Positions 46,973-54,090 of a DNA stretch of 64,000 bases are shown here, in pieces; the first letter of the stretch is position 1, and each line of letters opens with the position of its first letter. This stretch comes from Pelomyxa schiedti. Lineage: Eukaryota; Protista; Evosea. The position numbers and the translations under genes are program-made. The stretch is from NCBI GenBank assembly GCA_020536535.1, contig JAHLWZ010000508.1, positions 1-64,000 on the forward strand, read 5' to 3'. The notes beneath the pieces were generated by a model. That model did no database searches. It was given only the letters and a program-made list of their open reading frames with translations, and was not told where the DNA came from.

Positions 46973-49046
46973 CTAGTAGAACGAGGCACCCCTCCTGTTG
47001 GACGACAGGGGAACCACGAAAGACTGGGCCAGGTCCGGTGCGGCATTACTATCGGCTGCTACCGGGTTGTCCGTCAACATGGCTGATTGTTGTGTCTTGT
47101 CGGTAAAGTCCGGCTTGGGCTGTATGTATGTATTGTTGTAAGAACACATGGGAGTACTGTGGGTGGCGTGTGGGTAGACGTTACCGGTTTGCTGGGTCTT
47201 CTCTGCAGATTCGCGGGAATGGCTATGGGAAGTGAGGAACCATAAACATGCTCTGGGACTTGATTTTGCCCCTGCCGACGGGCCATTTCTTTGGCTCTTC
47301 TGGCCTTCTCAACTGCCTAAAAAACACAGTAAGTGCTGAGGTCTAAGGAAAAGTTGCGCACTGGGTCTGGCGGTGGTAGAGTGGCCGCTAAAGCCCGTCT
47401 AGCTTCTTCTCTTTTCCGCAAATCTTCATCCAACTCAAAGACACTGTTGGTCTCTGGTGAATGTAAGCAACATGATGCGGTTCCGTTAAATTAATTGTTT
47501 ATACCTGATGGTGATGCGGCGGAAGTATCAGCGGCTATGCGATGTTGTGCAGGAGGAGAGGTTAAAGGCGGCGATGTTGTTGATGTGGGGACAACTGGAG
47601 TGGCTACTGCTGACTTTGGATGTGTTAGAATGAAGGTATACAAAGGGGTTGAGAATCAACTTGTAATGCATGTTTGGAAAGTGTTTCAAGTTGGCTAATA
47701 AGACTTTGCATGTCTTTGTCTGCAACCATTTTTGTTCTCTCCAATAACTCAAGTTGATCGCGTTTATAAGCCCTGTTGTAACAGTACATTAAATCAAGAA
47801 GTTATTAGGTCATCGAGACCTTATTTTCTGCTTCACTATAGCTCTTTCTTCTTCAATGTAGTCCTCAAGGCGTTTGTTCAATTTTTCATGGAGATCCTTC
47901 ATTGTCAGTGACGGGGCAATGGGGTTAAGACTTGTGAATATTGAAGGTTCCTCTAAAGTGTGTCAAAAGTACACCAAAAATTTAGAAGGAATTACGCACT
48001 TGGGATGTTAGTGTACCCCGAGAGGTCGTTTACCAGTAACTTGAATGCATTTGAGAAATGCTTGCCGTCTGGTACAGAGGACTTTCCTTTCTACGAAACG
48101 TCAAAGTCAAATTAAACAAAAAAGACTTACACACCAACATTGCGGAAGTGTTGACAATCACAAGCGAGTCTGCTTTTGGGATTGAAGAGCGAGGAGTGGG
48201 TGGGTGGGGTGATGTTAGCAGCACCGGGTGAACAGCTGGCACTTGTGTGGCATATGAACCCCACCCAGCGGAGGAACCACTGATGACCCCTTGGCACACA
48301 ACACAGTGATGGATTCTCCAACCTTGCACGACTTTACTGTAAACGAGTGACTCTTGTTGCTGTTTGTTGTTTTTTTTTCATATCTGTTACTTCTTATTAT
48401 TCTTTGTTTGTTGTCAAGACAGTAAGCTTGGTTCACATACCGTAGTAGAAGATGCCAGAGCGAAAACGGTAGGCTCTTTCCAGCCAAGGATACTTATCAT
48501 TTTACTGACATCAGCCACATCCGCAGTAGCAGTAGCGCTAGCAGTTGCAGCTGACGGTTTAGCCACGTCACCAATCGCCGTTGACGACGTAGAAGCCGGC
48601 GCGGCACTCACATTTGGTTGTTGTGGTTGTGGTTGTGATGGTAGTGGTTGTATTTGTAATGGTGTTGTTGTTGTTGCTGTTGCTGTTGATGAAGATGTGG
48701 AGTTGCTGCTGCTACTAGTACTACTAGTCGCTGGCCTCACGAAAATTGATACATTTCGGCACGAGCACGTGAACATCACCTTGTCGTCGCTTTGTGTCGA
48801 CGAAGCAGGCGACGACGACGACGAGGACGACGTTGCGGGGGGTTGCGTCGCTTCGGCCGCCAACGTGGGCGTCGTCGGGGCCGGCGTCGTCGGCGCCGAC
48901 GTGAAAGATGGTATCGAGGGCGAAGGCGGTGGCGGTGGCGGCGGTAGCGCGGCTGTAGTTGTCGGAGGTTGTTGTTGTTGTTGTTGCTGATCGGATCTCG
49001 CGTCGCTCGGCCGCCGCGCGCCGCTGTCGCTGCCAGTGCTCATCAT
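46973..49046 (-). CDS. PRAS40/AKT1S1 (Lobe)-like protein, candidate TORC1 regulator
   Basis: N-terminal FTCSCRNVSI and WRIHHCVVC; coiled coil KLNKRLEDYIEEERAIVKQKI; TOS-like SVFELDED; VYGSSLPIAIP (cf. PRAS40 YAKSLPVSVP); C-terminal PDLAQSF. Confidence 0.55.
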
Positions 49047-49197
49047 CAAAGGGGGAAAAAGAAAGGTGTAATCAAGGAATAACGTTCTGTTTTTCGGTAC
49101 GTTACGCGACGGGTGATGGTTGTGTTGTGGTTTGTTTGGGGGGAGATCTCAGAGACTGGGGAGACTAGACAGGATTTAGTCTAGTGGTGGTAGCCAC

Positions 49198-50434: not shown

Positions 50435-53400
50435 TTAGGGTCTCAGCTTGCAATAGGTGGTAAAATCACCCCAATAAGCAGTGTACCCAGAGTCCTGGAA
50501 TATGACCCTCCAGTGTCGCCTGTTGTCATTGCTGTCTACCTCTGTCCTTACTGGTACCAGTGTTGTTCCAGCCAGTGTTCTCGTTGTTGGACATCTCTGA
50601 ACAACAGCGAATTGCCAGTGGAAGCTGATTCCAACCTTGAGGCCCAGTGTCACTGTCCACCACCATCCATCGCCATCTATTGTTGTTCTGGTCATAGTGG
50701 CTCCTTTGGAGAAGTCCAGGGCCCCCAGCTCCGGAATATCGCCGCATATGGACAGAACTTGGTCCGCGTGGTGGGTTATGTAGTGGATGTTGAACTGAAG
50801 CAGGGCCGGGATTCTGCCACAGGGGTCGACGAGGTCGAATGTGAGTTTGTATATGTTGGGTCCCTGGCACAGACAGCAGAAGCTGTAGCCGCAGGAGCAG
50901 GAGACAAGGTTGCAGCCACCTACGTCGTATTGGATTGGCCGGTTGCACCTGGGGCAACCCCGCGTGTTGTTGGCAATCCACTGTTGAAATGTTAGAATAT
51001 TGAAACCGGAACATTGAATTGCCATCTACCTGTGCGGATAGAGCGTCTTCTTCCAAAACTCTTTTCTGTTTCTTTGCTTCTGGCTCGTGCACAAATAGCT
51101 TCTTGGAAATGTCCTCACACCTGCTCAGATATTACTTTCTGAGACATATATACAGTTGGGAAAAAAGTAAAAATACACACCGGGAACCCGGGTGATACTG
51201 GAGGGAGCACCTCGCACAAAAGTGAAATCCACACTCCCCACATATTGCCTCATCGCAGACAACAAGACCTCCATAACTACATCTGGGGCACCGAACGAAA
51301 TCCGACATAATGCTTAACGTTTCCTGGAGCAGTCTTTCTTCAAAAGCGGCTTTGTTCCGAACGGAAGCCCTGAATGAGATTAATGGGAGTAATAATGTGG
51401 AAATACTGACAATATATCGTAATAAGAGGCTAAAGAGAGACATCCACGCCTTGGACAGCGGGGATGTGTTGACATGTTGTTTTTGAACCATTGATCCAAG
51501 CAATTCAAACAGAATCTGAGGTGCATTAAAAAGATATGTTAAGGTAATAGAGGTTTCAACGCACGCATGCGAACAACGACTCAAAGAAAGAAGGAGGCCC
51601 TCTTCCAGACAGATCCCACACAACCCCTTTGTTGGAGGTAATGGGGTCGGCTCTGACAGTTCATTGAAAATCTGCACCTGAGACTCTTTTGGATATTGCA
51701 TAAGACACTGGGAGGAACAGTGTGTGCCAAGGGGAAGTGCTTTAATGGGAGGATGGTCTGTAAATAGTATACATGCGGAGTTCATTAGGAACTGTACCAG
51801 CTGGGGATTGGAGTTCTTTATGGCATAGTCAATTGGGGTCATTTCCGGGAGGTCGTCATGTGCCTTGCAGTGGATCCTGCAATCAGCTCCAGATTCAACA
51901 AGCAGTTTGCATATTTCTGGAAAATTTCCAGCAGCTGCAGCATGCAAAGGAGTTTCGCCATATGGTGGGACAACTACTTGCGCTTTCACCCCACGCTTAA
52001 GAAGAGTGAGTACACCTTCAATGCATCCATGTTCACAGAGAAGATAGAGAACACTTGGAGGAATGGCAAGGAAACTCGTGGTGGGTACAAAGCCAGCAGG
52101 AGGTGTACGAAATTGTGAAGGATCGATATCACATAGTGGCGCAGCCCGTGCAAAGCGAGTGAACTGCACAGAATCCAATCCCCCACTGGCAAGACAGAGG
52201 GCCGCATAGTCCAGACAAGAGGGTTTAGTCTTCCACGTCACAGGGTGTGCGGATTCATTGCGCATGCATCCCCAGCGCTCCTTGAAATCTCGTGCACAGA
52301 GTCCTTCCAAGGCATCATCAGTTGTATTGTCAAGAAGCAGGTGAAGCAGGGGAACTGCGGAATGTTTTGTAGGAGCATCACTGAGAGCACGAACCAAAGC
52401 TGGTGAGAGTTGCCGACAGAATGAGAACTGGGAATAGGGAGAGCCCATGCACCTCTTGGGGGCCAGGACAGAGGAAGCCCCGAATCGCAGCAGTAGTTCG
52501 ACTGCCTGAGGGTAATGATCCACTGCCGAAGCAAGTGCCCGGCAGTCGTTTGGATTAACTCCGGAGAGGAGAAGTAGCTCAGCAGGCTCAACTCCCCATT
52601 CCAGAGCGCATAGAAGTAGCGATTTCTTTCCAAAGAGTTTTGGGAGAACTATACCTCGCAGGTCGAGAGGTAGAACTATTGGCTCAGTATCAGCAGGACG
52701 AGTTGTAACTTTAGTGGAGCAGTTCGATAACCCAGGTAGGGTTGTATGGCTCCGGATTTCCCGGTCTGTTTGAGTGACAAGTGCCTTCAATAGGGCGATA
52801 TTTCGGCGCACCAAAGAAGCTTCTAGAGCTACTAATTGGGTGCATCCATTACTTATTGATAAAGCACTGCGGGGCATGCGACCGGAATTTCGAATTTCAT
52901 TCAGAATTCCATCGATGAAGTTCCAGGTCGTATAACGAAAAATCATTGTGATCTGTTCCTGAGGAACAGTTTGGCGTGCAACTTTTGGGTTTTTTATTTG
53001 CCATTCATAAGGCACATCAGCCGGAATAAGAATTGGTGGCTGACGGAGTGGTAGTGGGTCCCCATAATCGTCCGATATTTCTTTCACATCCAGTAATTTA
53101 TAAGGTGATAACATACTTGGTATGGTCAGCAAACATGAAAGGGAAAAGAAACAGACACCTTTTATCAGGTACGGCGTGAAAGAGCCTTCCTAAATCGGAC
53201 ACAACCAAAGTACCATTTGTGTAACACTGTATCCCTAATTCTAGGCATGACACAGGGCACACCCAGCGAGAAACGTTATCTAATTGCATAAAGCGCTGCA
53301 GGTCCTTCATGCTTGTGCGGGAAATAATCCACTTTAAAATAAGAGTAACCTGAGTGTGAGACTGCGCAGAAGGCAGCGAATCCGCGGCAATCTTCAATGC

Positions 53401-54090
53401 CCTGTGCAAGGCAGGCGATTTGTTTTCCAAAGCTGGGCACTCATTGACAGTACTCGCACCAGCATGCAACAGAGATAGCACGGAATCAGTGTCAGTCCCA
53501 TCCACAGCCAGTGCCAAAGCGCACCCATCATCCGGGTCCGCTCCTGCCTGCAACAACAACTCCAAAGCCCTGTTGCACCACATCATAGCAGCAACAACAG
53601 GTCTCTGTCCCCTGCCTACATCCGGCATATTAATTCCCCTCAGGCTCACAGGCAGGCTCACACCCACAACGCCGGTCGGCCCCCGAACCGGCACATCAAC
53701 CGCAACCGCCCAGGCGGCCGATGCGTTCGAACGGGAATTCCCCACATTTTCCCCACTCCCATTAGCCGAACCGCCCTCGGTGCGCGTGGCCAGCATGGCC
53801 TCGAGGCACCTCGTGGCCCGCTTCTCGAGGCTGAGGGTCACGCAGGCCCACAGGGGGCTCCCGCGCCACCGGGAGTAGCGCTCCGAGTACGCGTCCACCT
53901 CCCAGTCCCAGTCCCAGTCCACGCACGAATTGTGGGTGCAGTCCGAGGCGGCGGGCGGCGCGACGCCGGGCAGGTTGGCGGGGTCCCACGAGGGGTCGCA
54001 GCCGAGGGACCGAGCCACCGTGTGCACGAGGCCCCTGTGGTCGTCCGCCGACACGAGCCCCACGAGGCGCCGCAACGTGCGCGGCCGCAT
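50435..54090 (-). CDS. Ankyrin-repeat RBR (RING-IBR-RING) E3 ubiquitin ligase with C-terminal CBM20-like domain
   Basis: Ankyrin: GETPLHAAAAGNFPEICKLLVESGAD. RING1: CGICLE...CSH. IBR: CPRCSYGG...CGECGFHFCARCSLQYHPGSRC. RING2: CPRCNRPIQYDVGGCNLVSCSCGYSFCCLC. CBM20-like: FNIHYITHHADQVLSICGDIPELGALDFSKGATM...WWWTVTL...FHWQFAV. Confidence 0.85.

Follow-up and report, generated by a model that had tools for sequence, protein, structure and literature searches.

An ankyrin-RBR-CBM20 protein of Pelomyxa schiedti with a diverged canonical glucan-binding site

The sequence analyzed, referred to as the window, comprises positions 1 to 64,000 of contig JAHLWZ010000508.1 of Pelomyxa schiedti (GenBank assembly GCA_020536535.1) and is eukaryotic, with approximately 47% G+C and short introns. 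The gene under study, Pelo_6410, lies on the minus strand at 50435-54090, the coordinates assigned to it by an earlier reading made from the sequence without database searches (the sequence-only reading), with the ATG at 54090 and the stop codon at 50435-50437, and encodes 1137 amino acids. Its spliced translation is letter-for-letter identical to P0052, the GenBank entry "hypothetical protein Pelo_6410 [Pelomyxa schiedti]", which bears out the suggestion that the host was Pelomyxa-like; at 54090, the alignment of the paralogue P0001 begins with its residue 3. Three long minus-strand open reading frames (ORFs), from 54162 to 50435, contain ankyrin repeats, an IBR, an IBR-type RING2 and then Pfam CBM_20. 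In the protein the order is degenerate N-terminal repeats, ankyrin repeats, RING1, IBR, RING2 and CBM20, placed as follows.

50435..54090, minus strand: coding region of Pelo_6410, stop included (identity of the spliced translation to P0052)
51774..52046, minus strand: ankyrin repeats, residues 668-758 (Pfam Ank_2, 59.5 bits; Ank, 46.3 bits)
51440..51620, minus strand: RING1 of C3HC4 type, residues 810-853, split by an intron (Pfam zf-C3HC4, 22.0 bits against a cut-off of 21)
51117..51344, minus strand: IBR, residues 872-927 (Pfam IBR, 43.3 bits)
50819..50980, minus strand: RING2, residues 957-1010, with the codon for Cys979 at 50912-50914 (Pfam IBR_1, 36.7 bits; ARIH1 alignment)
50438..50803, minus strand: CBM20 fold, residues 1016-1137 (Pfam CBM_20; AlphaFold2 and Foldseek; alignments to STBD1, glucoamylase and other CBM20s)

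RING2 and CBM20 both lie, without interruption, in the last ORF (50438-51025), in one exon and in one spliced RNA contig, so that the fusion is independent of any splice prediction or gene model. CBM20 begins six residues past the last RING2 cysteine. Public sequencing that covers the stretch consists of four runs from one study, three of them single-cell RNA libraries and one a DNA run that is probably the source of the assembly. An RNA contig of 1016 nucleotides (depth 12.5), from which four introns have been spliced, spans 51637 to 50423 and reads through RING1, IBR, RING2, CBM20 and the stop codon in frame. The single ankyrin-RBR-CBM20 chain that the sequence-only reading proposed is thus real and transcribed, as judged from the RNA contigs and the GenBank match, and the arrangement it described, a RING2 with the motif GGCN directly before CBM20, is found by Pfam as IBR-type RING2 and CBM_20 in one ORF.

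The C-terminus is a CBM20 at the level of both fold and family. Pfam CBM_20 (PF00686) scored 29.2 bits against the last ORF, 30.8 bits against the domain alone and 25.8 bits against the full protein, so that the profile check suggested beforehand exceeded the curated cut-off of 23.3 in each case, and the motifs quoted with the prediction (GGCN, ICGDIPELGAL, WWW-TVTL and FHWQF) are present. An AlphaFold2 model of the C-terminal 124 amino acids was obtained with a predicted local distance difference test score (pLDDT) of 83 and a predicted template modelling score (pTM) of 0.74. The expectation that this domain would model as a CBM20 was borne out by Foldseek comparison with solved structures, in which all 50 of the 50 matches listed were CBM20 domains or CBM20-bearing enzymes; the best were GDE5 (2z0b) and maltotetraose-bound STBD1 (8x8k), with template modelling scores of 0.74-0.87 and E-values of about 5e-6, and the top matches also included the CBM20s of glucoamylase, beta-amylase and CGTase. 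The input alignment for AlphaFold2 held eight sequences, genuine CBM20s among them, and the Pfam match is independent of it. The nearest clusters in the ESM Atlas, among those listed, all carry CBM_20.

Upstream of CBM20, Pelo_6410 has the domains that define an RBR protein, RING1, IBR and a RING2 with a catalytic cysteine, and on these grounds is predicted to be an active ubiquitin ligase. RING1 follows the pattern CGIC...CSHAFC..NC...CPRRGC, and its zinc ligands (8/8) can be read in the spliced sequence. The catalytic residue, Cys979, lies in a GGC that aligns on the GGC of ARIH1 RING2 and is invariant in three P. schiedti paralogues, Pelo_6410, KAH3766962.1 and Pelo_8059. Two residues after this cysteine (Cys+2) stands Leu in Pelo_6410 and KAH3766962.1 and His in Pelo_8059; the His of the Cys-His-Glu/Gln triad is absent from the first two. 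That this Leu marks a dead ligase was considered and dropped, as GGCNL is common to about half of the Ariadne-like relatives in a 28-sequence alignment and a His at Cys+2 is neither conserved nor required in all RBRs, HOIL-1 having Trp there (PMC9834252). Pfam detected no Ariadne domain (PF19422) and no UBA-like domain in Pelo_6410, CBM20 occupying the position of the former. The RING2 extension of HOIL-1 type (Zn2/Cys6 with a C-terminal His) is likewise lacking, with one Cys (DPC) found between the core RING2 and CBM20. A domain search of P0001 and P0052 gave no RWD match; KAH3766962.1 is named "RNF14" in GenBank without the support of an RWD domain, and the name looks like a best-hit transfer.

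The Ank-RBR-CBM20 architecture is a genuine lineage-restricted variant of the RBR proteins, found in the three P. schiedti paralogues. The 181-amino-acid RING2-CBM20 unit was searched with phmmer against 1.84 billion representative proteins, as a single-sequence query whose CBM20 is degenerate, with which most RBRs fall below the E threshold and a fusion on a distant RBR subfamily could be missed; this gave 51 matches at E ≤ 0.001, two of them spanning both halves. These two, KAH3766962.1 (1108 amino acids) and Pelo_8059 (1212 amino acids), are both from P. schiedti and share with Pelo_6410 the Ank-RBR-CBM20 layout and six intron positions. Local hidden Markov models for each half found RING2 and CBM20 together in none of the remaining phmmer matches. 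A word search with KAH3766962.1 found IBR and CBM_20 together in the three paralogues only, and one with the C-terminus of Pelo_8059 matched that protein alone. JGI metagenome contigs, scanned with a pattern from the RING2-CBM20 alignment, yielded no relative, and an ESM Atlas feature search no usable match. The Atlas fold search yielded many CBM20 fusions (to amylases, GH15, laccase, LPMO, GDPD, RNase E/G and trehalose-P synthase), none of them with an IBR. Outside Pelomyxa, the RBRs most closely related are Ank-RBR proteins in ENA assemblies, whose sequences stop directly behind the same DPCG motif, without CBM20; the longer members (784-785 amino acids) of the nearest Ank-RBR cluster were searched for a hidden CBM20, which was absent. 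A literature search found no published description of an RBR-CBM20 protein or of these Pelomyxa genes.

The glycophagy receptor STBD1, which has no ligase module, served as the reference for glucan contacts; among solved CBM20s its sequence is the nearest to that of Pelo_8059, and its structure is one of the top matches to the Pelo_6410 domain. Its site 1 consists of W293, K322, W334 and N339 and its site 2 of H271, Y272, V273, R333 and W355; N339A or R333A alone is enough for a large reduction in the binding of oligosaccharides, and effective binding of glycogen is described as requiring both sites (PMC11406230). Mutation of W293 abolishes amylose binding (PMC4076837). By alignment, the paralogues have the following residues at these positions.

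Pelo_6410: site 1, L1044, Q1079, T1102 and Asn; site 2, H1022, Y1023, I1024, R1101 and W1126
KAH3766962.1: site 1, W, L and T; site 2, H-Y-E at the positions of H271-Y272-V273, with R and W kept
Pelo_8059: site 1, W, K, W and N; site 2 counterparts present (H-Y-F, R and W)
50717..50719, minus strand: codon of L1044 in Pelo_6410
50612..50614, minus strand: codon of Q1079 in Pelo_6410
50543..50545, minus strand: codon of T1102 in Pelo_6410

In Pelo_6410, three of the four site-1 contacts are thus replaced (L, Q and T, against W293, K322 and W334 of STBD1) and only the Asn is kept, while each of the five site-2 residues of STBD1 has a counterpart. The caveat attached to the original prediction, that two canonical tryptophans looked substituted, was well founded, since these positions read L and T, and the site-1 Lys is in addition Gln. 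The CBM20 of Pelo_8059 matches STBD1 with an E-value of 4e-8 and the starch-binding domain of Aspergillus niger glucoamylase with an E-value of 4e-7, with W/K/W/N aligned. In the glucoamylase, site 2 is built differently from the STBD1 type. In Pelo_8059 (L002:3001-6955), Cys+2 is His (GGCSHM), the Trp of FCWLC is present and every residue of STBD1 sites 1 and 2 is retained. In the CBM20 of KAH3766962.1 (L001:5997-6599), a loop insertion of approximately 20 residues falls at the position of the site-1 Asn, so that its site 1 is likewise disturbed.

As Pelo_8059 keeps the canonical site, the ancestral state is taken to be a canonical binder. The Lys and second Trp would then have been lost before Pelo_6410 and KAH3766962.1 separated, and the first Trp in the Pelo_6410 lineage only. 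Pelo_8059, which lies on another contig, appears from its residues to be the most promising candidate of this genome for an RBR ligase that binds glycogen. The proposal of a self-contained glycogen-targeted ligase is plausible for the family and fits Pelo_8059 much better; for Pelo_6410 it is doubtful, given the three replaced site-1 contacts and the loss of amylose binding in the STBD1 W293 mutant.

The CBM20 of Pelo_6410 is under purifying selection and is not drifting freely. Compared with KAH3766962.1, synonymous divergence (dS) over this domain is 0.76 and nonsynonymous divergence (dN) 0.19, giving a dN/dS of 0.25; the ratio is 0.36 gene-wide, 0.48 in the N-terminus and 0.17-0.25 across the RBR-CBM20 part, and dS is unsaturated at 0.5-0.8. 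Neither the RING2-CBM20 linker (D.VDPC.RIPA.LQ) nor the C-terminal motif RHWRVIFQD varies among the three paralogues.

Along the alignment with KAH3766962.1 (L001:3001-6602), dS is uneven: it is 0.36-0.44 over the first three quarters, counted from the 5′ end, and rises to 0.76-1.2 once the IBR is reached. Gene conversion affecting the 5′ portion is one conceivable explanation, and differing regimes of mutation and selection are another.

It is probable, in our judgment, that the family began as a glycogen-tethered RBR ligase and that Pelo_6410 is a diverged paralogue in which glucan binding has weakened or changed. The most likely origin of the family would be the addition of CBM20 to an Ank-RBR ligase, with the beta-sandwich of CBM20 taking the place of the usual C-terminal accessory domain. 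As in a transthiolating RBR, RING1 would dock the ubiquitin-charged E2, and ubiquitin would move to Cys979 of RING2 and then to the substrate. CBM20 would anchor the ligase on an alpha-glucan, whether glycogen or some other, allowing it to ubiquitylate whatever sits on the particle, which is the logic of malin and laforin combined in a single chain. As substrates, proteins bound to glycogen are more probable than the hydroxyls of the glucan. Pelo_6410 and KAH3766962.1 would form a sub-lineage with a decayed canonical site 1, in which purifying selection still preserves the fold, the second site of STBD1 type and the junction of RING2 with CBM20. Pelo_8059 keeps the full binding apparatus. The CBM20 of Pelo_6410 may bind glucan weakly through the second site, or may dock another ligand or protein.

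The integrity of the full-length protein turns on one segment. RNA contigs define six GT..AG joints on the minus strand, one of which removes sequence that is coding in the GenBank model.

53116..53158, minus strand: intron 1, 43 nucleotides, GT..AG (RNA contig joint; paralogues with an intron at the same place)
51708..51772, minus strand: 65-nucleotide segment, coding in the GenBank model as 22 in-frame stop-free codons (spliced out in one RNA contig)
51516..51564, minus strand: intron within RING1, 49 nucleotides, GT..AG (RNA contig joint)
51370..51410, minus strand: intron, 41 nucleotides, GT..AG after a +1 shift (joint in two RNA runs)
51121..51180, minus strand: intron within IBR, 60 nucleotides, GT..AG (RNA contig joint, +5 ambiguity)
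50981..51029, minus strand: last intron, 49 nucleotides, GT..AG, immediately before RING2 (joint in two RNA runs)

A spliced model with all six RNA-supported joints removed was rejected, its frame being broken because the 65-nucleotide joint is phase-inconsistent; with 51708-51772 kept as coding, the ORF is intact over 1137 codons. An alternative in-frame intron was sought at this place, and the only option, of 33 nucleotides, is shorter than any intron of the gene and has no RNA support. At this position, the two paralogues each contain a genuine phase-2 intron, of 50 and 45 nucleotides. The ancestral acceptor AG, seen in KAH3766962.1, is mutated in the window, and the RNA contig uses a downstream AG that is coding in the paralogue. 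An in-frame ATG follows directly after this cryptic acceptor (the Met of LMQYPKE) and could in principle start a product consisting of RBR and CBM20 only.

Several observations weigh against the reading of Pelo_6410 as an expressed, diverged member of a family of glycogen-tethered ligases. The sole RNA evidence at 51708-51772 is the 65-nucleotide splice (one contig, depth 2.4), which shifts the frame and leads to a stop approximately 15 codons on, ahead of RING1, so that the full-length protein depends on retention of the segment. Two features set the RING2 of Pelo_6410 apart from 27 aligned relatives: a Val is added ahead of GGC, and the conserved Trp of FCWLC is replaced by Cys. The pairwise dN/dS averages two lineages, and the constraint could sit mostly in the paralogue. 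The retention of site 2 was read from sequence alignment by itself. In a two-domain AlphaFold2 model of RING2 and CBM20, the linker has low confidence (pLDDT 54-63) and the domains themselves are confident, and no fixed geometry between them is claimed.

Taken furthest, the splice evidence would make Pelo_6410 a decaying duplicate that has lost its intron-2 acceptor and, through a cryptic splice with frameshift and early stop, no longer makes RBR-CBM20 as part of a full-length protein. The mutated AG, the lost site-1 residues and the RING2 substitutions agree with this, as does the frame-breaking splice in the only RNA contig across the site, but that contig is a single one of low depth, the rest of the 3.4-kb coding sequence has neither stop nor frameshift, and the five other RNA-supported introns keep the frame open. 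The retained segment is moreover in frame and free of stops, for which the chance if unselected is approximately 1 in 8 (a rough estimate), and dN/dS is low over the RBR-CBM20 part; decay of this kind is considered quite unlikely. The opposite position is that Pelo_6410 is itself a competent self-contained glycogen-targeted ligase, held on the particle by the STBD1-type second site and the Trp triplet and ubiquitylating glycogen or glycogen-bound proteins. The CBM20 fold and Pfam match, the purifying selection on this domain, the expression of the gene and the retention of H-Y-I, R and W of site 2 with the Asn of site 1 all suit it, and Pelomyxa is described as glycogen-rich (an association of nucleus and glycogen in a Pelomyxa species is cited in PMC10579272). 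The replacement of three in four site-1 contacts nevertheless makes it unlikely, when in STBD1 the W293 mutation abolishes amylose binding and N339A and R333A each cut oligosaccharide binding by themselves.

CBM20 could also act as a regulatory lid in the role of the Ariadne domain, masking RING2 until released by a partner or by a ligand, which would be glucan in Pelo_8059 and something else in Pelo_6410. It stands directly after RING2, where Ariadne-family relatives have the Ariadne domain, with a junction sequence shared by all three paralogues; yet no packed interface was seen in the two-domain model, with its low-confidence linker, and the nearest Ank-RBR relatives lack any C-terminal domain, so that a lid is the least probable of the explanations considered. 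A glycogen-tethered ancestor with Pelo_6410 as a diverged copy is preferred over these three.

The components of such a protein are familiar from other systems. The sequence-only reading held that the established links between ubiquitin and glycogen use separate proteins; this is not entirely accurate, since RNF213 has a CBM20 and an E3 ligase in one polypeptide and ubiquitylates the non-protein substrate lipopolysaccharide, although the ligand of its CBM20 is unproven (PMC11549300). RNF213 differs from Pelo_6410 in being a giant animal ligase of AAA+/RING/RZ-finger type and not an RBR, with CBM20 at the N-terminal side. The malin-laforin pair is the analogue in function as regards glycogen-bound proteins: malin, a RING E3, is recruited to glycogen by the CBM20 of laforin and ubiquitylates proteins associated with the particle (Gentry 2005, as cited in PMC2714694). 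Here, however, two proteins are involved, malin being RING-NHL and not RBR and the laforin CBM20 being fused to a phosphatase; Pfam found no DSP or NHL domain in Pelo_6410.

HOIL-1 (RBCK1) resembles Pelo_6410 in being an RBR with a catalytic RING2 cysteine that is not followed by His at Cys+2 (Trp in HOIL-1, Leu in Pelo_6410), and is the top solved-structure match to the RBR module of Pelo_8059 (E-value 3.6e-12), with ARIH1 and ARIH2 about equal. It ubiquitylates glycogen and maltoheptaose through a specialized RING2 with a Zn2/Cys6 extension and a C-terminal His510 (PMC9834252). HOIL-1 has no carbohydrate-binding module, whereas Pelo_6410 has no such extension. The best solved match to the RING2 of Pelo_6410 is to ARIH1/ARIH2 (E-value 8e-6), with the shared pattern WIA.NT..CP.C....GGCN, and these differ from Pelo_6410 in having Ariadne and UBA-like domains where it has CBM20; its N-terminal ankyrins are as in RBRs of ANKIB1 type. 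ARIH1, together with the sugar-binding F-box protein FBS2, ubiquitylates a hydroxyl of N-acetylglucosamine, a precedent for pairing a lectin with an Ariadne RING2 (PMC12203941).

A further parallel is artificial. Ubiquitylation of glycogen in cells was shown only recently, and an engineered pairing of CBM20 with HOIL-1L was needed for efficiency: chemically induced dimerization of FKBP-GFP-CBM20 and FRB-HOIL-1L suffices for glycogen ubiquitination in human cells and leads to lysosomal delivery (PMC13345935, Nature 2026). In the Pelomyxa proteins, this pairing of CBM20 with an RBR ligase occurs naturally and in cis, with the difference that the RING2 of HOIL-1L is specialized for hydroxyl acceptors. 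A natural RBR with CBM20 on its RING2 would offer a simple recombinant system for asking whether tethering by itself lets an ordinary Ariadne-like RING2 modify glucans, or only glycogen-bound proteins. The three paralogues amount to a natural series of binding-site mutants (W/K/W, W/L/T and L/Q/T), useful for linking binding with activity; Pelo_6410 itself, as the most degenerate of the three copies at the canonical sugar site, is of lower value. It is highly improbable, if attractive, that Pelo_6410 sits on glycogen through its STBD1-like second site and ubiquitylates glucose hydroxyls directly, so that glycogen bodies are marked for degradation in lysosomes, and that with its two paralogues it makes up a natural one-chain system of graded affinity. 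Were glucose hydroxyls ubiquitylated by Pelomyxa proteins, glycogen ubiquitylation would be native outside animals.

The N-terminal 640 residues of Pelo_6410 gave no Pfam match. Within them, residues 138-308 and 451-637 (53167-53679 and 52230-52790) form a duplicated, degenerate ankyrin-like module of approximately 190 amino acids, with 30% identity between the copies (E-value 3e-12). At 50883-50884, the window reads C and T, but all four sequencing runs, including the DNA run, read T and A, which changes Ser1004 of RING2 to Tyr (CGYS to CGYY), as in KAH3766962.1; the discrepancy is due to an allele or else to the assembly or consensus. Variants specific to certain runs were seen at 50716 (Asp1045 to Asn; one RNA run), 51297 (two RNA runs), 52250 (one RNA run) and 50916 (DNA run only). 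Downstream of Pelo_6410, the neighbor at 48414-49049 on the minus strand is a low-complexity ORF rich in Ser, Thr, Pro and Gln.

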